64,000 nt of DNA. Origin: Haliotis rubra. Taxonomy: Eukaryota. The notes beneath the pieces were generated by a model that was not told the origin of the DNA, searched no databases, and saw nothing but the letters and a program-made list of their open reading frames with translations. Each line of letters opens with the position of its first letter. Within the stretch, counting starts at the first letter, position 1. A program made the position numbers and the translations under genes. Below, in pieces: positions 28,771 to 57,618 of this stretch. The stretch lies in contig NW_025767525.1 in NCBI RefSeq assembly GCF_003918875.1, positions 124,001-188,000 of the forward strand, given 5' to 3'.

Positions 28771-29450
28771 CCACACGACTTTCATGTACATTACAGAAAT
28801 AAACGTATCTTCCTGCGTTTTTAACTCATATTCACACAAACAAAACCTGTTAAAATGTTCTTTTTGAAATATAGCTCACGTTTATGTCCAAATACATGTA
28901 GAATGTTTCGAATATCTCCTATATAAATTTCAATAACCTCAAATGTAGTCTTCAGCCTCTTGGCATAAACCGTAAAGCATATACTAGTACTCGTATGTAT
29001 CAAAGGGATAGTAAGTTCAATATTGAGAGTTCAATAGCCTAATAGCGAGGACGCCTCTAGCCCGGAAACCCAGCCCCCAGACCAGTACTGCTTGGGAAGT
29101 ACCAATCTGTACACAAGTCTTAGTCCAGAATGTAGAAACTGGATAATTTCACTAAAATATGGCGAACTGAATGTAGCACTCTTAAATGGCCTCTCCAGAC
29201 ACAAGGCTACCTGTTACCTATGCACCATGCATACGGAAACCGAACACGCGTCTAAGTCGAGGTGAGTCTGGGCCTTGTCCACTAGGCAAACCAAGTCACG
29301 TATAACCACAGAAAGACACGAGACAGAAACACACAGGGACAGCAGGTTCAAGTCACGTGCAGGTAATGTGAAAACCAAACATCGGCTTTTTGAGATAAGA
29401 TATCAACATAGGTCAAGTGCTATTCTTTGGTACGAGTCGGACAAGACATC

Positions 29451-35164: not shown

Positions 35165-35446
35165 CCACACAGCCTTCATGTACCTTGCAGAAATAAAATA
35201 TCATTCTTTCCATGTCTCACTCATAATCATACCATCCAGGTACAAGCTGTGTGGGTATTCACAGCATATTTTCAGCATTAAATACAATGTTTCGAAACAT
35301 CTCCAGTCAAACCAGACGAACCACACATCCAGCCTTGGCATATACCCGGAGGCTAAAATGTTTCAGTCATACATATATTTTTTCAAAATATATTCTCTTC
35401 AAAAGTTTAGACTCACTTAAAACACTCACTATATGTTATGTATATA

Positions 35447-37558: not shown

Positions 37559-40500
37559 ATGCTCCAGTTTGCTGTTTTAGTGGTATTTTGGGGGGCAGCA
37601 AATGCCATTATATGTATTCCTGGGTTGTGCGCCTATGTGAAGCAAGTTCCCCTCAAGTGCACTGGTTCCATAGTCAAGGGGGGAGGATTCTGTGGGTGTG
37701 TTGACATCTGTGCCAAGGTATTTGTTCTCTGTTACATGTTGACATCTGTGCCAAGGTATTTGTTCTCTGTTACATGTCCATCTTTTCCGCAACGTTTTGA
37801 TGTGTGTATTATGCGACTGACGGATTAATCTCAACCAAACATTGTAACAGCTTTTATGTACTTGAAAAAAATATTAATACATGCCCACTTCCCTTTTTTA
37901 CTGGATTTCAAAGCTGTATAAATATTAGGGCTGCGCAATATAACCGGTTTACCGTTATTTGCCGCTTCAGACATGAAAACGGTACATATTGCGATACGCT
38001 GTTCGAAAACCGGTATTTTGACATGCATTCGGAAATCTTCGGATATTTCCTTTTTTTAAATTGTTCCTTTCCTTGTTTCATTTGTGACAAACATTATTTA
38101 CATTTATATTTTGCCATGATTAAAAGTTTTTTTAAAGCCTAATCAAGCATTGTGATTTTGTTGTGTTCTTGCTTTACAAATCAATCATTAACTCGACTAT
38201 AAGTAGGTTTTTTTGTTAAAAATAATTCTTGCAATATATTGCAATACATATCGCAATACATGCTTTCGCATCGCAATATATCGCAATACGAAAATTCCCT
38301 GCAATACCCACCCCTAATAAATATCCATACAATGATCAACCAAAATCCCAAAGACTACCACTGTTTACACAGAGACAAGTGGTAGTATTACAATGTGGAT
38401 TGTCAAACATTCAAAGGATTGGCTTGAATGTTTACAATTTTAAGTATTCTTAATGTCGACAAAATTTCTATTTTCAGAAGCCTGCTCTTGGAGTCTTTTT
38501 CAAGATGTTTCCATATCTTTCAATTTGCTAAACACTCACTCACTTCTACATTCAGGCTGAGGGAGAGGTGTGTCAGGCCCGTTACGAGAACGGTATTATA
38601 CCTGTGGGGTCATGTGACACAGGGTTGTTCTGCAAGGAGGAACACATTGGGGTTTATGGTGCGGGTACCTGTGTCAAGGACACGTTAAAGAGTAGGTTGA
38701 GCGTTGGGATCTCCGTTTTATTGTACACATGGTGTAAGGTGAAATGAAGAAATGAAGGATTTTAACGCAGAAATTGTCCCTTTAGGAGGGGAACTTTGGT
38801 GATAGTGCATGTGATTATCTGAAGTATTCATATTCTTCTCCTTTCATCTGTGACGTCAGAAATTGTTTATCAGTGTTTGTGGTTTTCTGAAGTATTCATA
38901 TTCTTCTCCTTTCATCTGTGACGTCAGAATATTGTTTATCAGTGTTTTTTTGGTTTCTGAAGTATTCATAATCTTCTCCTTTCATCTGTGACGTCAGAAT
39001 ATTGTTTATCAGTGTTTGTGGGTTTCTGAAGTATTCATATTCTTCTCCTTTCATCTGTGACGTCAGAAATTGTTTATCAGTGTTTGTGGTTTCTGAAGTA
39101 TTCATATTCTTCTCCTTTCATCTGTGACGTCAGAATATTGTTTATCAGTGTTTGTGGGTTTCTGAAGTATTCATATTCTTCTCCTTTCATCTGTGACGTC
39201 AGAATATTGTTTATCAGTGTTTGTGGGTTTCTGAAGTATTCATATTCTTCTCCACACTTGTGCGACATCGGGCGCTGCTTATCTTAAACTATCACCTGAC
39301 CTTTTAGGATCTGCGATGACCAAATGTGAGCGCATGGCCTACGTGCAGATGATGACCATGCGAAATTGGCCCAGCAAGTGGACGCCAGCCTGTGATGCCG
39401 ATGGTAACTTCACGCCATTGCAATGCAACTTCTCGGGTAAGACAACAGTGAAAGATGGTATGGTTTGTTATTAAACAGCTGTGGTCAAGCACGCAGTTCA
39501 TCCTGCCATTGTGGCATTCACGTGATAACTAACATTTTATGAGTGTTCCTGTTACATTATAAATTACTGGATTTCATCTTTTATCTGAATGAAAGTCACC
39601 ACGATTTCCGAAATATAACCGTGGGATATAAGATATATATTATCAAGATGGCTGTCATTTAAGCAACATTAACACGAGGCTTATATGTCAAAATGCATCC
39701 TAAAATACGGAAAATATCAGTGTTGACGTAACACAGACACCATTCTTGACGTAACAGACAACATTGTGGACGTAGCACAGACAACATTGTGGACGTAACA
39801 CTGACAACATTGTGGACGTAACACAGACAACATTGTGAACGTAACACAGACACCACTGTTGACGTAACACAGACACTGCTATTGACGTAACAGATAACAT
39901 TGCTGACGTAACACAGACATCATTGTGGACGTAACACAGACACCACTATTGACGTAACAGACAACATTGTGGAAGTAACACAGACAACATTGTGGACGTA
40001 ACACAGACATCATTGTGGACGTAACACAGACATCAGTGTGGACGTAACACAGACAACATTGTGGACGTTACACAGACACCACTGTTGACGTAACACAAAC
40101 ACCACTGTTCACGAAACACAAACACCATTGTGGACGTAACAACGACAACACTGCGGACGGAACACAGACAACATTGTGGACGTAACACAGACACCACTGT
40201 TGATGTAACAACAGACACCATTGTGGACGTAACACAGACACCACTGTTGACGTAACACAAACACCACTGTTCACGAAACACAAACACCATTGTGGACGTT
40301 ACACAGACACCACTGTTGACGTAACACAGACACCACTGTTGACGTAACACAGACAACATTGTGGACGTTACACAGACACCACTGTTGACGTAACACAGAC
40401 ACCACTGTTGACGTAACACAGACAACATTGTGGACGTTACACAGACACCACTGTTGACGTAACACAAACACCACTGTTCACGAAACACAAACACCATTGT

Positions 40501-41186
40501 GGACGTAACAACGACAACACTGCGGACGGAACACAGACAACATTGTGGACGTAACACAGACAACATTGTTGACGTAACACAGACACCATTGTGGACGTAA
40601 CACAGACACCACTGTTGACGTAATGTATGACGTAACAACACGGTTACACTTTATGTCTGGAATTAGAAATTCTTTGATACAGGCCTTTTAAACTAACTTT
40701 CTAGATTGCTTTTGATTAACAAAAGTATTGAGTAATATCATAATAATGATTTATCACAATATCATGATAAAATTCCACACACACCACATTCCCCGACGCA
40801 ATTTCCATAGCAAAATCAGAGAAAGCACCTGAGAAACCGATACTGGGGTGATGTACGTAGACACCGGGTGTCAAACTAACCGTGTATTGGGCACTGATGT
40901 GTTGTGCTTAAGAGATCAATTACTGATACAAGAAGTGTTCATTTTATTGGTAATGTGACCAGTTCTTATGTGTATGTGATGTATTTTTATGATATCTGTA
41001 CTCAACAAAGAATCATCTATGAAAAATGAAATCAGCAGCAGCAGCATCATCATCGTCATCAGCATCATCAATGATAGTAACAATTTGACAACTTGTGTTT
41101 CAGGTTTCTGTTTCTGTGTGAACTCCACCACTGGAGACATACAAACCGGCATGATCCATGGCCATGTCGACTGTCCTCCAGACTAG
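37559..41186 (+). CDS. Secreted IGFBP-N-like + thyroglobulin type-1 domain protein, paralogue C (168 aa; in-frame upstream ATGs at 37511 and 37535)
   Basis: Exons 37559-37717, 38556-38691, 39308-39436, 41104-41186. MLQFAVLVVFWGAANAIICIPGLC...GGGFCGCVDICAKAEGEVCQARYENGIIPVGSCDTGLFC...GTCVKDTLKRSAMTKCERMAYVQMMTMRNWPSKWTPACDADGNFTPLQCNFSGFCFCVNSTTGDIQTGMIHGHVDCPPD*. Confidence 0.9.
37926..38316. mobile_element. Non-autonomous hAT element, second copy, in C intron 1
   Basis: Same sequence family as 24736-25136; 8-bp TSD ataaatat. Confidence 0.85.
38818..39252. repeat. ~69-bp minisatellite (6+ copies) in C intron 2
   Basis: Unit ctgaagtattcatattcttctcctttcatctgTGACGTCAgaatattgtttatcagtgtttgtgggttt. 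Confidence 0.95.
39720..40623. repeat. 23-bp minisatellite (~39 copies) in C intron 3
   Basis: Unit tgttgacgtaacacagacaccac and variants. Confidence 0.95.
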
Positions 41187-41420
41187 CCGCGCAACCTTCG
41201 TGTACTTCACAGAAATAAACACATCTTTATTCCACACATATTCATACAAATTATATCGTTTTGAAAAAGTCAATTTACATTAAGCTGTATAAGCAGTAAT
41301 GTCGTGAACTTCAATATCTCTTCATGTGTTCCGATTTTGGTTCAAACTGAGGATGTTAGTCACAATCGTTTCCTCGATTCCATGCATCCAGCTGAATTCC
41401 GTTGTTCCGGATCCTGTTTT

Positions 41421-43715
41421 GTAGAGAAACCCAGCAATACGGGAGCTCAATTTACAATGGGACGTTACTCTGAAGAGAAACCTAGCAATACGGGAGCTCA
41501 CTTTACAAAGGGACGTTACTCTGCAAAGAAACCCAGCAATACGGGAGCTCACTTGACAATGGGACGTTACTCTGGAGAGACACCCAGCAATACGGGAGCT
41601 CACTTTACAAAGGGACGTTACTCTGTAGAGAAACCCAGCAATACGGGAGCTCAGTTTACAAAGGGACGTTACTCTGTAGAGAAACCCAGCAATACGGGAG
41701 CTCAGTTTACAAAGGGACGTTGCTCTGTAGAGCAACCCAGCAATACGGGATCTCAGTTTACAATGGGACGTTACTCTGTAGAGAAACCCAGCAATACGGG
41801 AGCTCACTTTACAAAGGGACGTCACTCTGGAGAGATACCCAGCAATACGGGAGCTCACTTTACAATGGGACGTTACTCTGTAGAGAAACCCAGCAATACG
41901 GGAGCTCACTTTACAAAGGGACGTTACTCTGTATAGAAACCCAGCAATACGGAAGCTCACTTTACAATGGGACGTTACTCTGGAGAGAAACCCTGCAATA
42001 CGGGAGTACACTTTACAAAGGGACCTTACTCTGTAGAGAAACCCAGCAATACGGGAGCTCACTTTACAAAGGGACGTTACTCTGTAGAGAAACCCAGCAA
42101 TACGGGAGCTCACTTTACAAAGGGACCTTACTCCGGAGAGAAACCCAACAATACGGGAGCTCACTTTACAAAGGGACGTTACTCTGGAGAGAAACCCAGC
42201 AATACGGGAGTACACTTTACAAAGGGACGTTACTCTGGGGAGAAACCCAGCAATACAGGAGTTCACTTTACAAAGGGACGTTACTCTGGGGAGAAACCCA
42301 GCAATACGGAAGCTCACTTTACAAAGGGACGTTACTCTGGAGAGAAACCCAGCAATACGGGAGCTCATTTTACTAAGGGACGTTACTCTGGAGAGAAACC
42401 CAGCAATACGGGAGCTCACTTTACAAAGGGACGTTACTCTGAAGAGAAACCCAGCAATACGGGAGCTCACGTTACAAAGGGACGTTACTCTGTAGAGAAA
42501 CCCAGCAATACGGGAGCTCACTTTACAAAGGGACGTTACTCTGGAGAGAAACCCAGCAATACGGGAGCTCACTTTACAAAGGGACCTTACTCTGTAGAGA
42601 AACCCAGCAATACGGGAGCTCACTTTACAAAGGGAGGTTACTCTGTAGAGAAACCCAGCAATGCGGGAGCTCACTTTACAAAGGGACGTTACTATGGGGA
42701 GTAACCCAGCAATACGGGAGCTCACTTTACAATGGGACGTTACTCTGGAGAGAAACCCAGCAATACGGGAGCTCACTTTACAAAGGGACCTTACTCTGTA
42801 GAGAAACCCAGCAATACGGGAGCTCACTTTACAAAGGGACGTTACTCTGGGGAGAAACCCAGCAATACGGGAGCTCACTTTACAAAGGGACGTTACTCTG
42901 GGGAGAAACCCAGCAATACGGGAGCTCAGTTTACAAAGGGACGTTACTCTGGAGAGAAACCCAGCAATACGGGAGTTCACTTTACAAAGGGACGCTACTC
43001 TGTAGAGAAACCCAGCAATACGGGAGCTCACTTTACAAAGGGACGTTACTCTGGAGAGAAACCCAGCAATACAGGAGTTCACTTTACAAAGGGACGTTAC
43101 TCTGTAGAGAAACCCAGCAATACGGAAGCTCACTTTACAAAGGGACGTTACTCTGGAGAGAAACCCAGCAATAAGGGAGCTCAGTTTACTAAGGGACGTT
43201 ACTCTGGAGAGACACCCAGCAATACGGGAGCTCACTTTACAATGGGACGTTACTCTGGAGAGAAACCCAGCAATAAGGGAGCTCACTTTACAAAGGGACG
43301 TTACTCTGTAGAGTAACCCAGCAATACGGGAGCTCACTTTACAATGGGACGTTACTCTGGAGAGAAACCCAGCAATACGGGAGCTCACTTTACAAAGGGA
43401 TCTTACTCTGTAGAGAAACCCAACAATACGGGAGCTCACTTAACAAAGGGACGTTACTCTGGGGAGAAACCCAGCAATACGGGAGCTCACTTTACAAAGG
43501 GACGTTACTCTGGGGAGAAACCCAGCAATACGGGAGCTCAGTTTACAAAGGGACGTTACTCTGGAGAGAAACCCAGCAATACGGGAGTACACTTTACAAA
43601 GGGACGTTACTCTGTAGAGAAACCCAGCAATACAGGAGTTCACTTTACAAAGGGACGTTACTCTGGAGAGAAACATAGCAATACGGGAGTTCACTTTACA
43701 AAGGGACGTTACTCT
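41421..43715. repeat. 51-bp minisatellite (~45 copies) downstream of C
   Basis: Unit gagaaacccagcaatacgggagctcactttacaaagggacgttactctgga. It generates the spurious long ORFs. Confidence 0.97.
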
Positions 43716-45059
43716 ATGTTCTCTTCTGCTTCATCCGGATTGTTCAATGAAAAGTATTCTACATGAACATATGGCTGCTTCGTGAACGAAGCCAATGTGA
43801 TATAATGCTGTCTTCTTGTAGAAAAATACATAATAACAATAGCGTTAGTTTGGACTGACCTGCTGTTTCATGTTCCCAAACAATGCGGAAATGAGCTATG
43901 CATGAAATCCACTTTGAAAAAGACGGTCCTCCAAGCAAAACTAAGAAAATCTCAATCCCGATCGCGTCATATAGACAGTGGTGTGTCATTTAGTGTGATA
44001 TGCAGTGTCTCATTTCGCGCCATGTGGAATTTATAATGGGGCAATGAACCAGTTACCAAAAGTGTAATAATCTCATTTTAGAATTTTTGAGAAATATTTT
44101 GGCGTTCTACCGCCCACGTGCGATCACATATATCCTTGTCTTATTATGCTGTTATTGTATTATTGTTAAACTGTTGCTTCCTGTGACTGCGTTAGGCCCA
44201 TACTCAGAAATATTGATAAATGCGTCCTAAAACAACAGTCGCTCTGCCACGCCTGCTTCATTGCTTACCGTCGCGTTTCTTTCTTTCGACAGTATATTTT
44301 GGTTGACTAGGTCATGGTTTTTATACTTCGACCAATACGTTTATCTACGACCGTGTGTTCATTGTAAACTGTCCACCGCATGTGCGTAGAAGCTAGTCAC
44401 ATAGCTGTGTACCCTAAGCACACAAGCACATTGTAGCACACTCAGGGTCAGTTTTAGAAGTGAACATATGCATTTGTTGCGTGATGCAGCGAATATGCAA
44501 TCTGCTGACAGAGACGTGTATAATGACCAGCTGTCAGAGTTCTAGCATGTTTGGCTTATCTAATCAGTTTACGCGTAGAATACTGTAGGCCACTAAAACG
44601 AAACCTTCTAGCTGCAAATATTCTGACGTTTTAGCGACTTTGTTAGAAATCTAGTTTACAGAATTAAATATTTATTCACTGTATTCAGTATGTGACATAA
44701 TGTGTTTGGTTTGTAACATAAATGACTCAATTTGTTCAAGTTGTCTCCAGCGTCTCATGAAGAGGGACAGTTTTCTAAACGAACTCTACACCGTCGTTTG
44801 TTCTATTCTTCAAGTCTGAGAAGATACGGTTTTACCATGCAATTTAGGACACATATCGTTATGTACTGGAAACGGTGATATCTACAGCAATTCGTTGTGT
44901 AAAGTTTCGGCCATTAGTAGGTGAAATCATACTGACGCATAAGCTCTACTGCTATTAATTCGAAAGACATCGCTTCGTAGCTCACAATATGATATTGCGT
45001 GCAATTCACATTGTTGTATATCATTACTTATCACATCCAAAAAGATCAGGATTACAGTG

Positions 45060-45585
45060 GATGAATGAATTGTGTTTTACGCCGCTTTTAGCAATATCCC
45101 AGCAATATCAGGGCTGGGGACAACAGAAATGGGCTCACACATTGTACCCATGTGGGGAATGGAACCCGGGTATTCGGCATGGTGAGCGAACGCTTTAACT
45201 CCTAGGCTACCTCACCGCCCCTCATGATTACAACTGGCCTTGAGCAACCAATACTTGGTGTAAGTGGCGACGAACGGGATCAGTTGGTGACTTGGTTGAT
45301 GCATGTCATCGTATCCTGATTGCGTACATCGTTGCTCATGATGTCAATCACTGGATTGTCTGGTCACATCGTTTACAGACAGCCGTCATGTATCTGGAAA
45401 TAAGGAATGCTGCGTGTTTCGTTAAACAACAAAGAGTGAGTGAGGATGTTTTGACGTGGCTTTTAGCAATATTCCAGCAATATCACGTCGGGGGACAACA
45501 GAAATTCACATACTGTACCCATGTGAGGAGAGGAACCCGGATTGGGGCGTGACGAGCGAGCGCATTAACCACTAGGCTAATACAC
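45060..45585. mobile_element. SINE cluster (family 1 -, family 3 +, family 1 -)
   Basis: Family matches; paralogous cluster at 53845-54280. Confidence 0.7.
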
Positions 45586-45754
45586 CATCCAAAACAGCAA
45601 AGGAAAAAAACTACATATAAGTACAGAGTAATCTGAATGACATGCTGTCTCTTGTTTGTTGTCGATACCGCGTTTAACGAAGATCGAGACTCTTCCCCAA
45701 CCCCCACCCCTCATTCCGATTCCACCACTAACCTATGTTGGGGCTCAGCGACCA

Positions 45755-45869
45755 GGGGCTCCTTTCATGAAGCAACCTTTACTAAGGTTAACCTTAACTC
45801 CCATTCTTTAACATTGCACTAAAGTTACCTCAGTGACTTACGACCCCCTTGCTTTGTGAAAGGAGGCCC
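45755..45869. mobile_element. Degenerate palindromic MITE
   Basis: ggggctcctttcatgaagcaa...ttgctttgtgaaaggaggccc. Confidence 0.5.
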
Positions 45870-46487
45870 AGTTTGGTGGCAATGCCTGTCGATGTAGAGT
45901 AAGTACTGAGGTATGAAGGTCATGTAATGACCAAATGAGGACTGGTTGAAACAGTGTTCGCATAGGCTTTTGAATGACAAGGCTGTGAGTGCCTCTACCA
46001 GTGCCAATAGCTTGATTCGAACTTGGGATTAGTTTCAAAAGGTTTCGCGATTTGATCGACGTCTTTCACGGGTTCACGTGGTTTGGGATCAGCTTTTATA
46101 CAGATCGTCGTCACTAAGCTTGTTCCCCATTAAGGTCCGAGTTACAACTGTTTTTCAACCCATGGTTGTTATAAGAGACGGCTAACGGAATAACGTTTTA
46201 AGGCTTACCTACTGGTTGGTGCATGTCATCGCGTCTTATTTGCTTAGATCGCTGGTCATTTTGTTAGTCACTGGATTATCTGGTCGAAAGCTTATTTACA
46301 GGTCGCCGCAATACAAATTGAACAGTGGCGTAAAAGAGCAAGCAAACAAAGAAACAAATACACATGTTGTTGTAATAATTCTGCGAAGTTAAAACAAATA
46401 TTAAAACATTGAGATGTTAACAAAGAATTGAATCAAAGTGATAAGCCGAAAGCCTATTTTCTTCCTTGCTCTGCCTGTATCTTGCTT

Positions 46488-46494
46488 TATAAAA
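46488..46494 (+). promoter_or_regulatory. TATA box of paralogue D
   Basis: TATAAAA 42 nt before the ATG; conserved in E. Confidence 0.65.
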
Positions 46495-46689
46495 GACAAG
46501 TCGGGCACATGGTCCAGTATTTTGACACGATGATCCGTCTAGCAGCGTTCCTGGCAGCCGTCGTGACGGCGGGGGCTATTGTTTGTACCCCTGACATGTG
46601 TGATGGGGTAGAGAAGACGCCCCTCACTTGCCCGGGGTCCGTCATCGAGGGAGGGGGCTTCTGTGGCTGTACAGACACCTGTGCCAAGG

Positions 46690-46852
46690 TGAGTGTGACT
46701 GAGTGAGTTTTGTTTTACGCCGCTTTTATCAATATTTCATCAATGTCACGACGGGGGACACCAGAAATAAGCATCTCATTTTGTACCCATGTGGGGAATC
46801 GAACCCGGGTCTTCGGCGTTACGAGCAAACGCTTCAACCACTGGGCTACCCA
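46690..46852 (-). mobile_element. SINE family 1 abutting the D exon 1 donor
   Basis: The reverse-strand tail begins at intron position +3; paralogous to 55030-55168. Confidence 0.8.
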
Positions 46853-46949
46853 AGTGAGGTGTGTTTAACTCGAGGTGACGTTTAGGTGTGTTTTTTATCA
46901 CGAATTCAAACCATGACACTGAATAATATTGTACTTTCGGTGGTAAAAA

Positions 46950-47165
46950 CTCAGCTCTCAGCAATATTCCAGCTATATGGGGCCATTCTGTAAATAATCG
47001 AGTCTGGACCAGACAATCCAGGGATCAACAGCTTGAGCATCGATCTACGCAACATATGAAGACATGTGTCAACCAAGTCAGTGAGCCTGAGCACCTGATC
47101 GTTAGTCGCCGCTCACGACAAGCATGGGTTGCTGAAGAACAATTCTAACCCAGATCTTCACTGGT
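46950..47165 (-). mobile_element. SINE family 3 in D intron 1
   Basis: Reverse family 3; paralogous to 55340-55740. Confidence 0.75.
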
Positions 47166-48639
47166 CACAACAGAACTTGTGCTGCTTTAATGATGAATGA
47201 ATTGTCAATAACAACAACTATTCTGATGCCACTCATGATATACATGTTTCCTGATCTAGGTAGAAGGAGACTTATGCCAGAAGTCCTCCCTGTTGACGGG
47301 GCCGCTCCCCGCACGACCAGTGTGACACGGGTCTCGTGTGCGACTCCGTCGGTAGTGCCTTCCTGGATCTGTTTGGGAAAGGCAAATGCGTGAAAGACAC
47401 ACAAAGCAAACGTTTTGTCTTTGACGGTAAGCAAAATTCAAATATGAACTTTTTTTTTTCTAGTCGTCGTATCACAAGATGCATGAGTGAGTAAGTGACT
47501 ATGGTGGTATGCCCATTTTAGCAATATTCCAGCAAATATCACTATTGGGGGGCACCGGAAATGTGCTCCACACATTGCACCCGTATAGGGGATCAGGATC
47601 CAGTTCTTTTTTAACCACTATACTGGCCCCCCTGACCCCAAATTACATGTGAAAGGTTTACGGTGTGAAAGACGTGCGTTCATGTACAGATGCACGTTGT
47701 AAGGACTGTAAGAAATATCGATTAAAATGTTTTCCAATTTCTTTATGAATTTCTAATTTTGCTAGGTTTTGGAACTCACGTTATAACTACATATACATGT
47801 ATATGACTGCGGTCCGTAAATAATCGGGATTGACTTAGCAATCCAGTGATTTCTTTTGTAATAACGGTGGTCAGTGTTAAGAGAGAGTGTTTTTTGTAAT
47901 TTGTAATTTGTAAAATCACATTGATTAAGTGATAATTATTATGGGTCGCAATGTTTAAAGTTTTGAGTGTGGGTTTTATGGTCAAATCTCGCATCATATA
48001 TGTTCAATGGCAATAGTATTTTTAGCGGCACGCCTTTTTGATAGCGCTTCAGAGTTGCCTCCCTTGGCAATCTTGTTTATTTACGGCTTTCATCATGCCG
48101 TGGAGTTTTCCACCGATTTCGACGGATTTCTATAAAGTTCTGAGTGGATAATGATACAGCCTAGCTTTGCTAGAATGCTCGAGAACTGTGAGCTATATAA
48201 AGGCTGGTTGTTGTGTTGTGACACGGACTTTTCACATGACTGGATTTATACACATCTGTCTCCCATCGTTGTTCAACATTTCAAGATTGACCCTGCTTGC
48301 CTGCTGCCATTATCATCTACCTTCAATCAGTATATCTGCTCTCACTGTAAATGTCAAGACTCTGGCGAGTTAATGTTTTAATTTTGTGACCCAATATTTT
48401 AGATTTTTGACTCAATTGCATTTACTAGATATATGTATTGTCATTCATTGTAATTTGCTCATTGTTTGCTCAATATATTATTGAATATTTTAGACTTGTT
48501 TGTGTTCTATTTTGCTGGTTCAAAGGGGACTTTTGAACCTTTTGTCACGGTAATTTATTAACCGTAACATCAGTGGATGTCAACTTCTATATTATGAGGA
48601 ACACAACGTTTTGGAGTTATATGCTTACTCCTTCATCCT

Positions 48640-49125
48640 TTTGGGTTCGATTACTTTTCTGTGCTCGACTATACCTTTGTGTTGGACTACTTTTTGTGCT
48701 CGACTATACCTTTGTGTTTGACTACTTTTTGTGCTCGACTACCTTTGTATTGGACTACTTTTCTGTGCTCGACTATACACTTCTGTTGGACTACTTTCTG
48801 TGCTCGACTATACCTTTGTGTTGGACTACTTTTCTGTGCTCGACTATACCCTACTGTTCGACTACTTTTCTGTGTTCGACTATACCTTTGTGTTGGACTA
48901 CTTTTTGTGCTCGACTATACATTGTGTTGGACTACTTTTCTGTGCTCGACTACCTTTGTGTTGGACTACTTTTCTGTGCTCGACTTCTGTTTGTGTTGGA
49001 CTACTTTTCAGTGCTCGACTTCTGTTTGTGTTGGACTACTTTTTCCTGTGCTCGACTACCTTTGTGTGGACTACTTTTTGTGTTTGACTACTTTTTTGGT
49101 GGACTACTTTTTGTGCTGGACTATT
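48640..49125. repeat. ~18/36-bp minisatellite immediately upstream of D exon 3
   Basis: Unit gtgctcgactatacctttgtgttggactacttttct. Confidence 0.9.
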
Positions 49126-49431
49126 TTTTAAACTATCACCTGACGTTTTAGGATCTGAGACCAAATGCCAGCACTTGGCGTACTCGCAGATGATGTCCAT
49201 GCAATATGGGACAACCCAGTGGCAAGCAGACTGTGATACTGATGGTAACTTCCGACCCATGCAGTGCGACATCGGGGGTAAGACAACAGTGACAGATGGT
49301 ATAGTTTGTTATCAAACAGCTGTGGCCAAGCACGCAGTTCATCCTGCCATTGTGGCCTTCACGCGATAACTAACATTTTATTATAATTCCTGTTCCATCA
49401 TCAATTACTGGATTTAATCTTTTGTCTGAAA

Positions 49432-49595
49432 TGAGTGAGTGAGTTTAGTTTTAAGCCGCTTTTAGCAATATTCCAGCAATATCACGTCGGGGGATGCCAG
49501 AAATGAGATTCACACATTGCACCCATGTAGGGATTCGAACCCGGGTCTTCGCCGTGACGAGCAAACGCTTTAATCACTAGGCTACCCAACCGCCC
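49432..49595 (-). mobile_element. SINE family 1, present in duplicate copy 2 only
   Basis: TSD ttgtctgaaat; empty site at ~39585 in copy 1. Confidence 0.85.
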
Positions 49596-49748
49596 TTGTC
49601 TGAAATAAAAGTATTTACACATGTCACCATGATTCCGAAATACATCCGTAGGATATAAGATATTTATTTTCAAGATGGTTGTAATTAAAGCAACATGAAG
49701 AAGAGGCTTACATGTCATAATGAATCTTAAAATAAGGAAAATACCAAT

Positions 49749-51391
49749 TGTGGACGTAACACAGACACCACTATTAACGTAACACAGACAACATTGTGGA
49801 CGTAACACAGACACTACTGTTCACGTAACACAGACACCATTGTGGACGTAACAAAGACAACACTGCGGACGTAACACACACATCATTGTTGACGTAACAG
49901 ACAATATTATGTACGTAACACATACAACATTGTGGACGTAACACAGACACCACTGTTAACGTAACACAGACAACATTGTGGACGTAACACAGACACCACT
50001 GTCCACGTAACACAGACAACATTGTAGACGTAACACAGACAACACTGTTGTAGGCGTAACAAAGACACCACTGCTGGCGTAACACAGACAACACTGTTGC
50101 CGTAACACAGACACCACTGAGGACGTTACACAGACGACACTGTTACCGTAACACAGACCACTGTTGACGTAACACAGACACCACTGTGACGTAACACAGA
50201 CAACACTGTTGACGTAAAACAGACACCACTGTTGACGTAACACAGACAACATTGTAGACGTAACACAGACAACATTGTGGTAGGCGTAATGAAGACACCA
50301 CTGCTGGCGTAACACAGACAACACTGTTGATGTAACACAGACACCAATGTTGACGTAACACAGACACCACTGTTGACGTAACACAGACACCACTGTTGAC
50401 GTAACACAGACACCACTTTTGACGTAACACAGACACCACTGTTGACGTAACACAGACACCACTGTTGACGTAACACAGACACCACTGTTGACGTAACACA
50501 GACACCACTGTTGACGTAACACAGACAACACTGTTGACGTAACACAGACACCACTGTTGACGTAACACAGACACCACTGTTGACGTAACAAAGACACCAC
50601 TGTTGACGTAACACAGACACCACTGTTGACGTAACACAGACACAACTGTTGACGTAAAACAGACACCACTGTTGACGTAACACAGACACCACTGTTGACG
50701 TAACACAGACACCACTGTTGACGTAACACAGACACCACTGTTGACGTAACACAGACACCACTGTTGACGTAACACAGACACCACTGTTGACGTAACACAG
50801 ACACCACTGTTGACGTAACACAGACACCACTGTTGACGTAAAACAGACACCACTGCTGGCGTAACACAGACAACACTGTTGATGTAACACAGACACCAAT
50901 GTTGACGTAACACAGACACCACTGTTGACGTAACAAAGACACCACTGTTGACGTAACACAGACACCACTTTGACGTAACACAGACACCACTGTTGACGTA
51001 AAACAGACACCACTGTTGACGTAACACAGACACCACTGTTGACGTAACACAGACACCACTGTTGACGTAACACAGACAACACTGTTGACGTAACACAGAC
51101 ACCACTGTTGACGTAACACAGACACCACTGTTGACGTAACACAGACACCACTGTTGACGTAACACAGACACCACTGTTGACGTAACACAGACACCACTGT
51201 TGACGTAACACAGACACCACTGTTGACGTAACACAGACACCACTGTTGACGTAACACAGACAACACTGTTGACGTCACACAGACACCACTGTTGACGTAA
51301 CACAGACACCACTGTTGACGTAACACAGACAACACTGTTGACGTAACACAGACACCACTGTTGACGTAACACAGACACCACTGTTGACGTA
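49749..51391. repeat. 23-bp minisatellite (~70 copies) in D intron 3
   Basis: Same unit as 39720-40623, more homogeneous. Confidence 0.95.
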
Positions 51392-52180
51392 ATATAGGGC
51401 GTAACAACACGGTTATACTTTATGTCTGGAATTAGAAATTCTTTGATACAGGCCTTTTAAACTAACATTCTAGATTGCTTTTGATTAACAAAAGTATTGA
51501 ATTGGAGTATAATATCATAATGATTTATCACTATATCATCATAAAATTCAACACACACCACATCCCGGACACAATTTCCATAGCAAAATCAGAGAAAGCA
51601 CCTGAGAAACCAATACTGTGGTGATGTACGTAGACACCGGGTGTCAAACTAACCGTGTATTGGGCACTAATGTGTTGTGCTTAAGAGATCAATTACTGAT
51701 GCAAGAAGTGTTCATTTTATTGGTAATGTGACCAGTTCTTATGTGTATGTGATGTATTTTTATGATATCTGTACTCAACAAAGAATCATCTATGAAAAAT
51801 GAAATCAGCAGCAGCAGCAGCATCATCAATGATAGTAACAATTTCACAACTTGTGTTTCAGGTCTCTGTTTCTGTGTGAACTCCACCACTGGGGACATAC
51901 AAACCGGCAAGATCCATGGCCATGTTGACTGTCCTCCAGACTAGCCGCGCAACCTTCGTGTACTTCACAGAAATAAACACATCTTTATTCCACACATATT
52001 CATACAAACTATATCGTTTTGAAAAAGTCAATTTACATTAAGCTGTATAAGCAGTAATGTCGTGAACTTCAATATCTCTTCATGTGTTCCGATTTTGGTT
52101 CGAACTGAGGATGTGTTAGTAACAATCGTTTCCTCGATTCCATGCATCCAGCTGAATTCCGTTGTTCCGGATCCTGCTTC

Positions 52181-52333
52181 GTAGAGAAACCCAGCAATAC
52201 GGGAGCTCACTTTACAATGGGACGTTACTCTGGAGAGAAACCCAGCAATGCGGGAGCTCACTTTACAAAGGGACGTTACTCTGGAGAGAAACCCAGGAAT
52301 ACGGGAGTTCACTTGACAAAGGGACGTTACTCT
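52181..52333. repeat. 51-bp minisatellite, 3 copies, downstream of D
   Basis: Same unit and flanks as 41421-43715. Confidence 0.9.
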
Positions 52334-52560
52334 ATGTTCTCTTCTGCTTCATCCGGGTTGTTCAATGACAAGTACTCTACATGAACATATGGCTGCTTCG
52401 TGAACGAAGCCAATGTGATATAATGCTGTCTTTTTGTAGAAAAATACATAATAACAATAGCGTTAGTTTGGATTGACCTGCTGTTTCATGTTCCCAAACA
52501 ACGTGGAAATGAGCTATGCATGAAATCTTCTTTGAAAAAGACAGTCCTCCAAGCAAAACT

Positions 52561-52727
52561 ACTGACTGAGTTTGGTTTTACGCCGCTTTTAGCAATATTC
52601 CAGCAACATCACGGCGGGGGACACCAGAAATGGGCTCCACATATTGTACCCCTGTGGGGATTCGAACCTTTGGATCTTCGGCGTGACGAGCCAACGTTTT
52701 AACCACTCGGCTACCCCACCGCCCCCC
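52561..52727 (-). mobile_element. SINE family 1, present in duplicate copy 2 only
   Basis: TSD ~caaaact; empty site ccaagcaaaactaagaaaatc at ~43931 in copy 1. Confidence 0.85.
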
Positions 52728-53844
52728 AAACAAAACTAAGAAAATCTCAATCTGGATCGCGTCATATGGACAGTGGTGTGTCATTTAGTGTGATATGCAG
52801 TCTCATTTCGCGCCATGTGGAATTTATAATGGGGCAATGAACAAGTTGCCAAAAGTGTAATAATCTCATTTTAGAATTTTTGAGAAATATATTGGCGTTC
52901 TACCGCCCACGTGCGATCACATATATCCTTGTCATATTGTGCTGTTATAGTATTATTGTTAAACTGTTGCATCCTGTGACTGCGTTAGGCCCATACTCAG
53001 AAATATTGATAAATGCGCCCTAAAACAACAGTCGCTCTGCCACGCCTGCTTCATTGCTTACCGTCGCGTTTCTTTCTTTCGACAGTATATTTTGGTTGAC
53101 TAGGTCATGTTTTTATACTTCGACCAATACGTTTATCTACGACCGTGTGGTCACTGCATGGGCATGTGCGTAGAAGCTAGTCACATAGCTGTGTACCCTT
53201 AGCACACAAGCACATTGTTGCTCACTCAGGGTCAGTTTTAGAAGTGGACACATGCATTTGTTGCGTGATACAGCGAATATGCAATGTACTGACAGAGACG
53301 TGTATAATGACCAGCTGTCAGAGTTCTAGCATGTTTGGCTTATCTAATCAGTTTACGCGTAGAATACTGTAGGCCACTAAAACGAAACCTTCTAGCTGCA
53401 AATATTCTGACGTTTTAGCGACTTTGTTAGAAATCTAGTTTACAGAATTAAATATTTATTCACTGTTTTCAGTATGTAACATAATGTGTTTGGTCTGTAA
53501 CATGAATGACTCAATTTGTTCAAGTTGTCTCCAGCGTCTCATGAAGAGGGACAGTTTTCTAAACGAACTCTGGCCCGTCGTTTGTTCTATACTACAAGTC
53601 TGAGAAGACACGGTTTTGCCATGCAATGTAGTCAAAATATCGTTATGTACTGGAAACGGTGATATCTACAGCAATTCGTTGTGTAAAGTTTCGGCCATTA
53701 GTAGGTGAAATCATACTGTCGCAAAGGCTCTACTGGTATTAATTCGAAAGACATCGCTTCGTATACTCACAATTTGATATTGCGTGCAATTCACATTGTT
53801 GTATATCATTACTTATCACATCCAAGAAGATCAGGATTACAGTG

Positions 53845-54220
53845 GATGAATGAATTGTGTTTTACGCCGCTTTTAGCAATATTCCAGCAATATCAGGGCT
53901 GGGGACAACAGAGATGGGCTTCACACATTGTACCCATGTGGGGAATAGAACCCGGGTTTTTGGCATGGTGAGCGAACGCTTTAACTCCTAGGCTACCCCA
54001 CCGCCCCTCATGATTACAACTGGCCTTGAGCAACCAATACTTGGTGTAAGTGGCGACGAACGGGATCAGTTGGTGACTTGGTTGATGCATGTCATCGTAT
54101 CCTGATTGGGTACATCGTTGCTCATGATGTCAGTCACTGGATTGTCTGGTCACATCGTTTACAGACAGCCGTCATGTACCTGGAAATTAGGAATGCTGCG
54201 TGTTTCGTTAAACAACAAAG
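53845..54220. mobile_element. SINE family 1 (-) plus family 3 (+)
   Basis: Duplicate of 45060-45430. Confidence 0.75.
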
Positions 54221-54827
54221 AGTGAGTGAGGTTTTAAGTCGCTTTCAGCAATATTCCAGCAATATTCCAGCAATATCATGGCAATAACAGTTTTCACATA
54301 TGCTTACATTTTTAATGACAAGGCTGAGAGTCCTTTGACCAGTGCCAGTAACTTCATTCGAACTTGGGGATAAGTTTCAAAAGGTTCCGTGGTTTGATCG
54401 GCGTCTTTCACGAGTTCACATGGCTTGGGATCAGCTTTTGTACAGATCGTCGTCATTACGCTTCTTCCCCGTTAAGGTCCGAGTTACAACTGTTTTTCAA
54501 CCCATGGTTGTTATAAGAGACGACTAACGGGATCCCGTTTTAAGACTTACCTACTTGGTTGGTGCATGTCATCGCGTCTTAGATCGCTGGTCATTGTGTC
54601 AATCACTGGATTATCTGGCCCAAAGCCTATGTACAGGCCGCAGCCATATAGCTGGACAAATTCTATTCCTGGCGTAAAAGAGCAATCAAAGAAACAAATA
54701 CTCCATGTTGTTGTAAAAATTCTGCGACGTCAAAGCAAATGTTAAAACGTCGAGGAGTTAACAAAGAGATTATCAATCTGATAAGCCGAAAGCCTATTTT
54801 CTGCACAGCTCTGCCTGTATCTTGCTT

Positions 54828-54834
54828 TATAAAA
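54828..54834 (+). promoter_or_regulatory. TATA box of paralogue E
   Basis: TATAAAA 41 nt before the ATG; same context as in D. Confidence 0.65.
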
Positions 54835-54868
54835 GACAGGTCGGGCACATGGTCCAGTATTTGACACG

Positions 54869-57618
54869 ATGATCCGTCTAGCAGCGTTCCTGGCAGCCGT
54901 CGTGACGGCGGGGGCTATTGTTTGTACCCCTGACATGTGTGATGGGGTAGAGAAGACGCCCCTCACTTGCCCGGGGTCCGTCATCGAGGGAGGGGGCTTC
55001 TGTGGCTGTACAGACACCTGTGCCAAGGTGAGTGTGACTGAGTGAGTTTTGTTTTACGCCACTTTTAGCAATATTTCATCAATATCACGACGGGGGACAC
55101 CAGAAATGGGCTTCACACATTGTACCCATGTCTTCGGCGTGACAAACGAACACTTCATCCCACCGCCCCCTGTGCCAAGGTATGTTGAGTGAGTGAGTGA
55201 GGTGTGTTTAAGGCTGCTTTATTAGAAACTCAAATGATACCGAATAATATTGTATATTGTGTGGTAAAAATAACCAGATTAAACTTATTTTTTCAGTGAC
55301 GACAACGAGTTTGGGTGTTGGTTTTGTTGGTGGTGGTGGTGGTGTTGCCGTGAATAATCTTGTCTGCACCAGACAATCCAGTGATCAACGACATGAGCTT
55401 CGATCTACGCTAGTGGGATACAATGACGTGTCAACCAAGTCAGCGAGCGGATACGATGACACGTGTCAACCAAGCGGGGCGGTTAGGGTAGCCTAATGGT
55501 TAAAGCGTTCGCTCGTCACGCTGAAGACCCGGGTTCGATTCCCCACATGGGTACAATGTGTGAAGCCCATTTGTGGTGTCCCCCGCCGTGATATTGCTGG
55601 AACATTTTGCTAAAACCGGCGTAAAACTAAACTCATTCACTCAACCAAGCCAACGAGCCTGCCCACCCGATCCCTGTAGTCGCCTCTTACGAGAAGCATG
55701 GGTTACTGAAGATCAATTCTAACCCAGATCTTCACGGGTCACAACAGAACTTGTGCTGCTTTAATGATGAATGAATTGTCAATAACAACAACTATTCTGA
55801 TGCCACTCATGATATACATGTTTCCTGATCTAGGTAGAAGGAGACTTATGCCAGAAGTCCTCCCTGTTGACGGGGCCGCTCCCCCACGACCAGTGTGACA
55901 CGGGTCTCGTGTGCGACTCCGTCGGCAGTGCCTTCCTGGATTTTTTCGGTAAAGGCAAATGCGTGAAAGACACACAAAGCAAGCGTTTTCTCTTAGACGG
56001 TAAGCAAATGTCAATATACTCTTTATTGTTATCTGATGAATTAAGACAGTTAAGAGAGTACATAGCATTGTGGCCATAGTCATCGTATCAGAGGAGGCAT
56101 GACATTACATGCTTGAGTGAGTGAGTGACAATGGTTTGAGTACATAGCATTGTGGCCTTAGTCATCGTATCACAGGAGGCATGACATTACATGTTTGAGT
56201 GAGTGAGTGACAATGGTTTGAGTACATAGCATTGTGGCCATAGTCATCGTATCACAGGAGGCATGACATTACATGTTTGAGTGAGTGAGTGACAATGGTT
56301 TGAGTACATAGCATTGTGGCCTTAGTCATCGTATCACAGGAGGCATGACATTACATGTTTGAGTGAATGAGTGACAATGGTTTGAGTACATAGCATTGTG
56401 GCCTTAGTCATCGTATCACAGGAGGCATGACATTACATGTGACATTGAGTGAGTGAGTGACAATGGTTTGAGTACATAGCATTGTGGCCATAGTCATCGT
56501 ATCACAGGAGGCATGACATTACGTGCTTGAGTGACATTACGTGTTTGTGAGTGACAGTGGTTTGAGTACACCTCTTTAACACTGCGTTTGCAATGTCCAG
56601 TTTGATCGACAAACATCAAGTTTGCTGGTCTGTTACACAAACTGTTAATAAAATGCTAACATTCCCAGATATTACCGCGTGTGAGAAGATGAAGATCGCG
56701 AAGGCGTCCCAGCCGACATACTCGGACAACTGGACGCCAAAGTGTGACGCCGACGGGGCCTTCGAGCCAATGCAGTGCGACCTAGCAGGTAAGGTTGAAC
56801 GACGCCATCATTCGTTACCACTCGCCCCTTTCCGTAACTGCCAAGAAGAAGCTATTCGGCTTGTTCCGGAATAACACGAGTTGGCCACGAATGAAACGCC
56901 ATGTGACATCATTCCTGCAAATAGGTTTTTCTGTTATTCCACGACTGATCAACTTAATTGGGTAGAAAATATAAAAGGTGAAGTTGGCAAAGATGTTTTC
57001 CACTTTCTTGAAATAACGAGTCATAAAAGCCTAGTCGTCTAATAACCTACACGGAGCTTAAGCCTTTGAAGTTCATGCTAGCCCGCTAGCCCAAGACTTC
57101 TAAGTTCCGCTGACCACAAATCCTCACTGACTAGAAACATTTGAGGGCTAGAGCCAGCATTCAATGTTTTCATTTTGTTACAAACGGGAGCTGAATGGAA
57201 TTGACAGAAAATGTAAACTTTCAAGGAAGCACAGACTCTGAGAACTTAATAACTATTTAGACATGTCTTGAAAACGCCAAATTAATTTATCATTTTATGT
57301 GAGTGAGTGAGTGAGTAAGGCTTTAAGCCGCTTTTAGCAATATTCCAGCAATATCACGGCGGAGGACACCAGAAATGGGCTTCACGCATTGTACCCATGT
57401 GGGGAATCGAACCCAGGTCTTAAGCGTGATGAGCGAACGCTTTAACCATTAGAGCTTTAACCATTACCACACACTGACAAAACTCACAGGGTATACATTG
57501 GCTATTGCGACAGTAATTTGGCTTGCTTGATGTTCCAGGTCGTTGCTTCTGCGTCGATTCTGCGGGTCAGATTCAAGGTAGCAGAGTTCAAGGAAAGGTT
57601 ACCTGTCCAAGCACTTGA
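54869..57618 (+). CDS. Secreted IGFBP-N-like + thyroglobulin type-1 domain protein, paralogue E (174 aa)
   Basis: Exons 54869-55027, 55834-55999, 56669-56788, 57539-57618. MIRLAAFLAAVVTAGAIVCTPDMCDGVEKTPLTCPGSVIEGGGFCGCTDTCAKVEGDLCQKSSLLTGPLPHDQCDTGLVCDSVGSAFLDFFGKGKCVKDTQSKRFLLDDITACEKMKIAKASQPTYSDNWTPKCDADGAFEPMQCDLAGRCFCVDSAGQIQGSRVQGKVTCPST*. AATAAA at 57644-57649. Confidence 0.9.
55030..55168 (-). mobile_element. SINE family 1 inserted in the E exon 1 splice donor
   Basis: 13-bp TSD cctgtgccaaggt at 55017-55029 and 55169-55181. Confidence 0.85.
55476..55642 (+). mobile_element. SINE family 1 nested in a reverse family 3 SINE (55340-55740)
   Basis: TSD tcaaccaagc; absent from the D paralogue. 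Confidence 0.85.
56056..56570. repeat. 82-bp minisatellite (~6 copies) in E intron 2
   Basis: Unit gagtacatagcattgtggccatagtcatcgtatcacaggaggcatgacattacatgtttgagtgagtgagtgacaatggttt. Confidence 0.95.
57299..57460 (-). mobile_element. SINE family 1 in E intron 3
   Basis: Reverse family 1 body. Confidence 0.8.

Follow-up and report, generated by a model that had tools for sequence, protein, structure and literature searches.

Exon 3 of a tandemly duplicated gene in Haliotis rubra is older at silent sites than its flanks

The stretch of DNA analysed here (the window; 64,000 nucleotides, whose own numbering is used throughout) comes from Haliotis rubra and carries five genes, A–E, that lie head to tail on the + strand at ~26.3-57.6 kb, with four coding exons each. 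Once spliced, gene C yields a product that matches the RefSeq protein 'nidogen-2-like [Haliotis rubra]' (P0001) at 100% identity, and genes A and E likewise match RefSeq proteins (P0004 and P0007, respectively). Our subject is exon 3 of gene D, which differs from exon 3 of gene C far more than the adjoining intron sequences do. At its silent sites exon 3 is older than its flanks, and the D copy has changed about three times faster than the C copy. The units that hold the two exons are a conversion mosaic, the architecture of gene D is older than the split between H. rubra and H. asinina, and the fast change of D is concentrated in one loop (L1) of the encoded domain. We read this as a pair of old paralogous exons with homogenised flanks and a fast D lineage, a reading that we hold at about an even chance; with the same confidence, the 26% difference in exon 3 reflects age plus a faster protein clock in D, not a burst after recent duplication.

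The features on which the comparison of C and D turns are these:

49152..49277, + strand: exon 3 of gene D; AG/GT borders, open frame, 21.3 bits with PF00086, present in independent read sets
39308..39436, + strand: exon 3 of gene C, the slowly evolving counterpart; matches P0001, 22.1 bits with PF00086
49128..49151, + strand: the 24 bases before D exon 3 (branch point CTGAC, pyrimidine tract, AG); 23/24 identical to C (39284-39307)
49278..49434, + strand: proximal intron 3 of D; 94% then 83% identical to C, followed by a short interspersed nuclear element (SINE) that C is without
51862..51944, + strand: coding part of D exon 4 (CFCV, stop codon); the C counterpart is 41104-41186

In a MAFFT alignment of 39260-39600 with 49104-49442, exon 3 gave 93 matches and 33 mismatches over 126 aligned bases (26%), plus a 3-base gap, whereas there was one mismatch in the 24 bases 5′ of the exon 3 acceptor, six in the first 104 bases of intron 3 (94% identical), and four in the 83 coding bases of exon 4. 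The adjoining 128 flank bases thus hold seven mismatches (~5%), and 2,450 further non-coding bases between the units diverge by 3.9% (96/2450). The excess in exon 3 was significant against both (Fisher's test; P = 4e-6 for the 128 flank bases and P = 1e-16 for the 2,450 further bases), and the exon borders are AG/GT in C and D alike. The counts of differences in exon 3, next to its acceptor, in the first 104 intron bases and in exon 4 had been given in a preliminary description of this DNA and were reproduced by the alignment, as were its ~21 amino-acid changes and 4 purely synonymous codons in exon 3; the conserved cysteines and DGNF core that it reported for D were also confirmed, all scaffold residues being retained. 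The flanks are less uniform than this comparison implies: the next 52 bases of intron 3 (39541-39592) have 9 differences (17%; 83% identical) and other parts of the unit have 0% or 13%, so that the 'intron' baseline for C versus D is itself a mosaic.

The D exon is not an assembly error. Exon 3 of the D type was found, with 2-3 differences, in contigs from another sample of this organism and from a second organism label in a different study (the contigs being assembled from low-depth runs), and its presence in these other samples shows that it is real. The D-type contigs also carry D-type flanks, and the C type sits on separate contigs. Both exon types occur under the second organism label, with flanks ~1% different, so that the difference between the C and D exons predates that split.

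Silent sites place the age of the exon apart from that of its surroundings. By the Nei-Gojobori method, silent divergence (dS) between the C and D exons is 0.52 (8.5 differences in 22.5 sites) and replacement divergence (dN) is 0.31 (25.5 differences in 100.5 sites), giving a pairwise dN/dS of 0.59. This dS is roughly tenfold the 0.039 of the flanks (P between 1e-6 and 3e-4) and is high in the helix, loop and C-terminal parts of the exon alike (0.36-0.88). The 20 codons with an unchanged amino acid, in which path counting is unambiguous, contain 4 silent differences in 8.7 sites (P = 3e-4 against a 4% rate and 8e-3 against 10%). Had D been derived from C at the point when their flanks last matched in full, only ~1 silent difference would be expected in exon 3. 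Because dS exceeds that of the flanks by such a factor, selection on amino acids cannot be the cause; and because silent sites are as diverged as replacement sites, exon 3 as a whole far predates its surroundings.

Conotoxin mature-peptide exons and abalone sperm lysin are the familiar fast-evolving exons of secreted mollusc proteins, and they are defined by dN/dS >1. D resembles them in being a secreted mollusc protein on a cysteine scaffold, with the scaffold kept and the loops replaced. A selected exon of that type would have both dN/dS >1 and a dS no higher than that of neutral flanks, and D exon 3 has neither. Codon-model maximum likelihood (ML) on the five paralogous exons gave a D-branch dN/dS of 0.65-0.89, not significantly different from 1 or from the background (0.44-0.54), and the shift in transition:transversion ratio in exon 3 was not significant (11:23 versus 49:47, P = 0.07). 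These results do not establish rapid adaptive change of D exon 3, and the diversifying selection favoured in the preliminary description finds no backing in a pairwise dN/dS of 0.59, the branch values above, or a dS about ten times that of the flanks.

Self-BLAST blocks and windowed identity show that the likeness of C and D is that of one ~9.8-kb tandem unit present twice. Gene D is chimeric, with an E-like 5′ half and a C-like 3′ half, since the units run across gene boundaries:

39284..47444, + strand: tandem unit 1 (self-BLAST); C exon 3, intron 3, C exon 4, intergenic DNA, D exons 1-2
49128..56018, + strand: tandem unit 2 (self-BLAST); D exon 3, intron 3, D exon 4, intergenic DNA, E exons 1-2
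46530..46688, + strand: D exon 1, identical to E exon 1 (54869-55027)
47260..47426, + strand: D exon 2; E exon 2 is 55834-55999, and D has one extra G at 47311

Divergence between the two units varies with the part compared:

bulk intron 3, 3′ flank and intergenic DNA: 3.9%
~540 bases upstream of D/E exon 1: 13.3%
199 bases around D/E exon 1: 0 differences
first 100 bases of D/E exon 2: 1%
last 67 bases of D/E exon 2: 10.4%

The dispersion index of this divergence is 4.3 (P = 2e-16). Within the 13% region lie a perfect run of 201 bases (46521-46721 = 54860-55060), which covers D/E exon 1, and another of 148 bases (47163-47310 = 55737-55884), which covers most of exon 2 and ends at the extra G; a permutation test gave P < 2e-4 for perfect runs of this kind in such a region. 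Repeated conversion, in tracts that differ in age, has left this mosaic. The ordinary pattern is seen in the control pair A/B, in which exon 3 differs by 10% and the introns are beyond alignment.

Between-species comparison, made at the protein level, bears on the age of this arrangement. The H. asinina protein P0009 shares the D layout, with E-like exons 1-2 and C/D-like exons 3-4, and the D architecture therefore predates the H. rubra/H. asinina split. Exon 2 products are 94% identical between D and E in H. rubra and 98% in H. asinina, and 74-78% identical between the species; exon 4 products of rubra C and D are 92% identical, and each is 76% identical to asinina D. Identity is higher within than between species in both exons, so the likeness of D to its neighbours has been kept up by concerted evolution. 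In exon 3, rubra D is 48% identical to asinina D and 46% to rubra C, the long D branch hiding the topology. Relatedly, H. asinina has proteins of the D and E layouts (P0009, P0012, P0011) whose 5′ halves are nearly identical, and no protein with the C layout (an A/B-like 5′ half and a C/D-like 3′ half) was found outside H. rubra.

The mosaic divergence and the protein comparisons together indicate that intron 3 was homogenised recently. The preliminary description had set two findings against its own preference, namely a dN/dS of no more than 1 along with a near-identical donor of the exon, or recent homogenisation of the intron; for the duplicates, dN/dS is ≤1 and the intron does appear homogenised, but no near-identical donor came to light. 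Its fallback, conversion limited to the exon, was right in that the locus bears a conversion-type mosaic, but the direction is probably reversed, with the flanks overwritten and not the exon.

Exon 3 is the first element of the tandem unit, and intron 2 of C, D and E has no common homology beyond the 24 bases preceding exon 3. Of these bases, 19/24 are also common to C and A (hand count); the stretch is thus constrained, and its identity between C and D needs no conversion. Introns 2 of C, D and E each end in a satellite array of their own at the same spot, directly before exon 3, and no cross-homology was found among the three arrays (all from Tandem Repeats Finder):

48640..49124, no strand assigned: satellite with a 35-bp unit, end of D intron 2
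38818-39253: satellite with a 69-bp unit, end of C intron 2
56056-56534: satellite with an 82-bp unit, end of E intron 2

On the right, at the opposite edge of the unit, exon 2 likewise becomes more diverged towards its end, consistent with an edge effect. This layout suggests how exon 3 may have been left out. Gene conversion or unequal exchange would keep overwriting one ~9.8-kb unit with the other, from intron 3 and exon 4 through the intergenic stretch into exons 1-2 of the gene that follows. To the left of exon 3, with only the 24 constrained bases, a conversion tract would have almost no homology to end in, and a tract arriving from the right would have to cross the 74%-identical exon, whose divergence would block heteroduplex extension. 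Exon 3 may in this way have escaped homogenisation mechanically, each added difference making further escape likelier, and selection for a distinct D exon may, instead or in addition, have kept it apart. Both the escape at the edge of homology and any such role of selection are inferred.

Several observations weigh against old exons with homogenised flanks. It would take a coincidence for a tract to homogenise 104 intron bases yet halt just a few bases from the exon, unless selection or mismatch rejection trimmed it; selection for a distinct D exon would explain better why the low-divergence intron starts so near the border. Homogenisation of the intron would follow from mosaicism within one genome and from protein comparisons, and the silent-site estimates for exon 3 are drawn from only ~22 sites. 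ML puts most of the change, silent change included, on D (0.85-0.96 substitutions per codon, versus 0.16-0.22 for C), an excess that also fits a locally raised mutation rate. At the protein level asinina D exon 3 is nearer to rubra C (75%) than to rubra D (48%), orthology of the D exons hangs on a shared one-codon-shorter start, one Glu and one Tyr, and no gene of the C architecture was found for H. asinina in the protein database.

The following features enter into the analysis of the D lineage:

56669..56788, + strand: E exon 3, a distant paralogous exon used as outgroup; matches P0007
27949..28077, + strand: A exon 3, with B exon 3 (33859-33987) both outgroup and control pair
49202..49231, + strand: codons 17-26 of D exon 3, the L1 loop between helix 1 and Cys2, placed from the AlphaFold model of C

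When the C-D differences were polarised by A, B and E, 23 were specific to D and 8 to C (P = 0.011); replacement changes numbered 18 on the D lineage and 5 on the C lineage, and silent changes 5 and 3. The D exon 3 protein is only 33-48% identical to every other exon 3. Its changes pile up in L1, where 9 of 10 residues (133-142) differ between D and C, compared with 12 of 31 elsewhere (P = 0.009); the loop dN/dS is 1.47, which is not significant. Against this turnover, D retains 8/8 residues that are ≥85% conserved in 31 family sequences, for which random placement of D's 17 Cys1-Cys3 changes gives P = 1.3e-3. The read-variable sites in D exon 3 are 49214 (Thr21Pro) and 49223 plus 49225 (Gln24 to His or Tyr), so that all three variants are replacements within L1 and none is silent. 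The reference allele of D exon 3 differs from all the other read sets at two sites, and codon 24 has three states (Gln, His, Tyr).

Thyropins reach into the protease cleft with three loops, L1-L3 (PMC10889554). What ties the cluster proteins to the thyropins is a fold match to the p41 thyropin fragment, together with the literature on L1-L3, and they are at most putative inhibitors of papain-like proteases. The preliminary description had proposed a binding surface, and this part of its argument stands insofar as D is fast and its changes accumulate in the protease-contact loop; selection on that surface does not follow from the data, and selection on the D L1 loop is possible. Beyond this, we entertain as a somewhat unlikely proposition that D is a working gene with a remodelled L1, polymorphic under diversifying selection for a new ligand or protease, and that selection rejects conversion tracts that would restore the C type. 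If that were true, D would exemplify, in nature, neofunctionalisation in the face of conversion, within an invertebrate family of IGFBP-like or thyropin-like proteins.

The state of gene D admits a darker interpretation, in which the mosaic history is as we propose but D is dying, with exon 3 drifting unconstrained while conversion from C and E refreshes the rest; the exon 3 difference would then have no functional meaning. In this assembly the extra G at 47311 in exon 2 breaks the frame, with a stop after 21 codons; there is no database protein for D, although A, C and E have one; D exon 3 was in no RNA run; the D-branch dN/dS does not differ from 1; and every read variant alters an amino acid. 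We nevertheless think a dying D unlikely. The extra G lies within a tract otherwise identical to E, and therefore either arose very lately or is an assembly indel error; the RNA runs on record are so small that their silence is uninformative; the exon 3 frame is open and its splice sites intact; and a copy free to drift would not be expected to keep 8/8 family-invariant residues with half of the positions changed. Far less credible is the idea that the units are alleles or mis-joined haplotigs and the D exon an error-ridden copy. The assembly does have N gaps, with runs at 7733-7862 and 8232-8361 in the window, and long satellites, and the single-base indel in D exon 2 is suspicious, but D-type exons with D-type flanks, on contigs apart from the C type, come from another sample and another study, and an annotated H. 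asinina protein has the D layout; we regard such an artefact as extremely improbable.

Two further explanations start from a recent duplication, of which the 4% flank divergence is suggestive, and both are at odds with the presence of the D architecture in H. asinina. According to one, D exon 3 was then overwritten by a short tract from a diverged paralogue that is absent from the assembly or since lost. Imported sequence would be diverged at silent and replacement sites alike, as is seen, exon-sized tracts do occur in the cluster (the 201- and 148-base runs), and an assembly with gaps and collapsed satellites could lack a copy. The genome-wide donor search that the preliminary description suggested returned none, however, in the 1.38-Gb assembly: by DNA, D exon 3 found only itself, C and a 60-base stretch of A, and by protein, D (100%), then C (50%) and A, B and E (38-46%). 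In reads of the two other samples, the D type and the C type are each represented by a single sequence, and, since C and D share derived states on a common stem of ~0.5 substitutions per codon, the donor would itself have to be of the C/D type. A paralogue within the window was tried as donor and rejected: 22 of the 23 D-specific states match none, one matches E, and none matches A or B. We consider an unseen donor distinctly unlikely. According to the other explanation, exon-limited rapid change in D followed the duplication, driven by diversifying selection on the binding loop and possibly by a locally raised mutation rate of the sort reportedly once proposed for conotoxin exons. It would account for the fast D lineage (23 versus 8 changes), the concentration of change in L1 on a preserved scaffold, the three replacement variants segregating with no silent one and with a three-state codon among them, and the long ML branch of D for all site classes. 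It sits poorly with the overall dN/dS of 0.59 and a D-branch value not above 1, with the non-significant loop dN/dS and transition:transversion shift, and with flanks that are demonstrably a conversion mosaic; moreover, the C branch has ~3 silent changes where ~0.45 would be expected at the flank rate (hand Poisson estimate ~0.01). On this balance a recent burst is doubtful, if anything a shade more so than an unseen donor.

A divergence peak in duplicates that undergo gene conversion is a described pattern (Teshima and Innan 2008; reviewed in PMC3924837), and two of its elements are found here: paralogues that exchange sequence, and a narrow peak of 26% in the exon versus 5% in the adjoining 128 bases. 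Exon 5 of the primate red and green opsins forms such a peak between homogenised introns 4 and 6 (PMC3924837). As in the opsins, the flanking introns of the tandem neighbours C and D are more alike than the exon between them, the cluster carries independent signs of ongoing conversion, and converted parts are closer within a species than between orthologues. The opsin peak is explained by two known tuning residues and its orthologous exons group across species, whereas C and D are known from sequence alone; and the C/D exon, unlike that of the opsins, lies at the physical edge of the homology block, so that purely mechanical escape suffices. In the colobine RNASE1 duplicates, coding sequence is more diverged than non-coding sequence (PMC3924837). 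C and D likewise have coding divergence in excess of intron and untranslated-region divergence between young-looking duplicates, and the RNASE1 debate—recent duplication and selection versus older duplication and conversion—parallels the present one. RNASE1 has a single-exon coding region and an experimentally verified functional change, whereas in C/D one of the four exons is affected and the evidence is that of the sequences.

The phenomenon is of a known kind, then, and the family and the locus are new examples of it. It carries a warning for genome scans, in which an exon more diverged than its intron is usually taken as positive selection: in tandem families such an exon can merely mark the piece that conversion left alone, and silent sites separate the two cases. 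The locus is compact and well delimited, and it combines a protected exon and an old chimeric gene with tracts of conversion, in a mollusc family with the full IGFBP domain layout. If the L1 changes are adaptive, the C/D pair would be a ready contrast for finding what these proteins bind.

In all five genes, two domains are each split into halves over a pair of exons: an IGFBP-N-like domain lies on exon 1, which also encodes the signal peptide, and on exon 2, and a thyroglobulin type-1 (Tg1) domain is divided between exon 3 and exon 4, the latter having CFCV instead of CWCV and carrying the stop codon. The six-Cys Tg1 pattern is present throughout, with Cys1, Cys2 and QC in exon 3 and CFCV and the last Cys in exon 4; D exon 3 encodes Cys1, the helix, the L1 loop, Cys2, DGNF and QC. 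Exon 4 of E starts at 57539 on the + strand and its coding part ends at 57618. Pfam PF00086 scored 33-43 bits for the whole proteins C, A, E and asinina D, and exon 3 alone passed the cut-off of 20.6 for both C and D. PF00219 (IGFBP N-terminal) stayed below its cut-off for the cluster proteins (20.4-22.2 bits versus 28), and some bivalve and chiton relatives carry a precomputed PF00219 match. A genome-wide PF00086 scan found 12 other loci and missed the window copies because an intron splits their domain; it did not help in locating a donor. Gene B (29450-35164) has exons that are intact one by one, yet it is without a database protein, unlike A, C and E.

The structure model is that of the C protein; for D, the exons were analysed singly, X standing in for the break in exon 2. 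The AlphaFold model of the Tg1 domain has predicted local distance difference test (pLDDT) values of 82-93 and comprises a helix (120-130), a loop (131-142) and strands (152-154 and 159-163). The top Foldseek match of the C model was IGFBP3 (7WRQ_B; 156 columns over both domains, E 1.4e-5), with further matches to SIBD-1 and to the N domains of IGFBP7 and IGFBP4, and its C-terminal domain matched the p41 fragment (1ICF_I) with a template modelling (TM) score of 0.71. The model matches the layout of vertebrate IGFBP1-6, an N-terminal IGFBP domain and a C-terminal Tg1 domain, the latter like the thyropin fragment of the p41 invariant chain. The family proteins differ from IGFBPs in being much shorter and nearly linkerless, in having CFCV for CWCV, and in their sub-threshold PF00219 scores. 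Other gastropods, bivalves, a chiton and a bryozoan have relatives with this layout, and members of the family are 165-184 residues long, with almost no linker.

Some smaller features of the tandem units and of the control pair are recorded here. The perfect runs over D/E exons 1 and 2 resemble short tracts of recent conversion that have exons at their centre, the reverse of what is seen at exon 3. The exon 1 donor in D and E lies within the GTGA-repeat head of a SINE-like element (46689-46720, 55028-55060), and the first 33 bases after exon 1 are identical in the D and E introns. The likeness of A and B (89-91%) is confined to exons 3 and 4 and ~40 flanking bases (27913-28089 = 33824-33999 and 28647-28803 = 35041-35197); the low dS of 0.24 in their exon 3 is a hint that this pair, too, has undergone conversion limited to exons. 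In intron 3 of D, contigs of three other read sets depart from the reference at 49389 and resume with sequence resembling that past the SINE (49389-49620), which indicates that the SINE-bearing segment is an insertion/deletion polymorphism. Satellite copy number differs widely between units 1 and 2, with 39.5 versus 71.5 copies of a 23-bp satellite (39721-40623 and 49749-51392) and 45 versus 3 copies of a 51-bp satellite (41423-43715 and 52183-52333).

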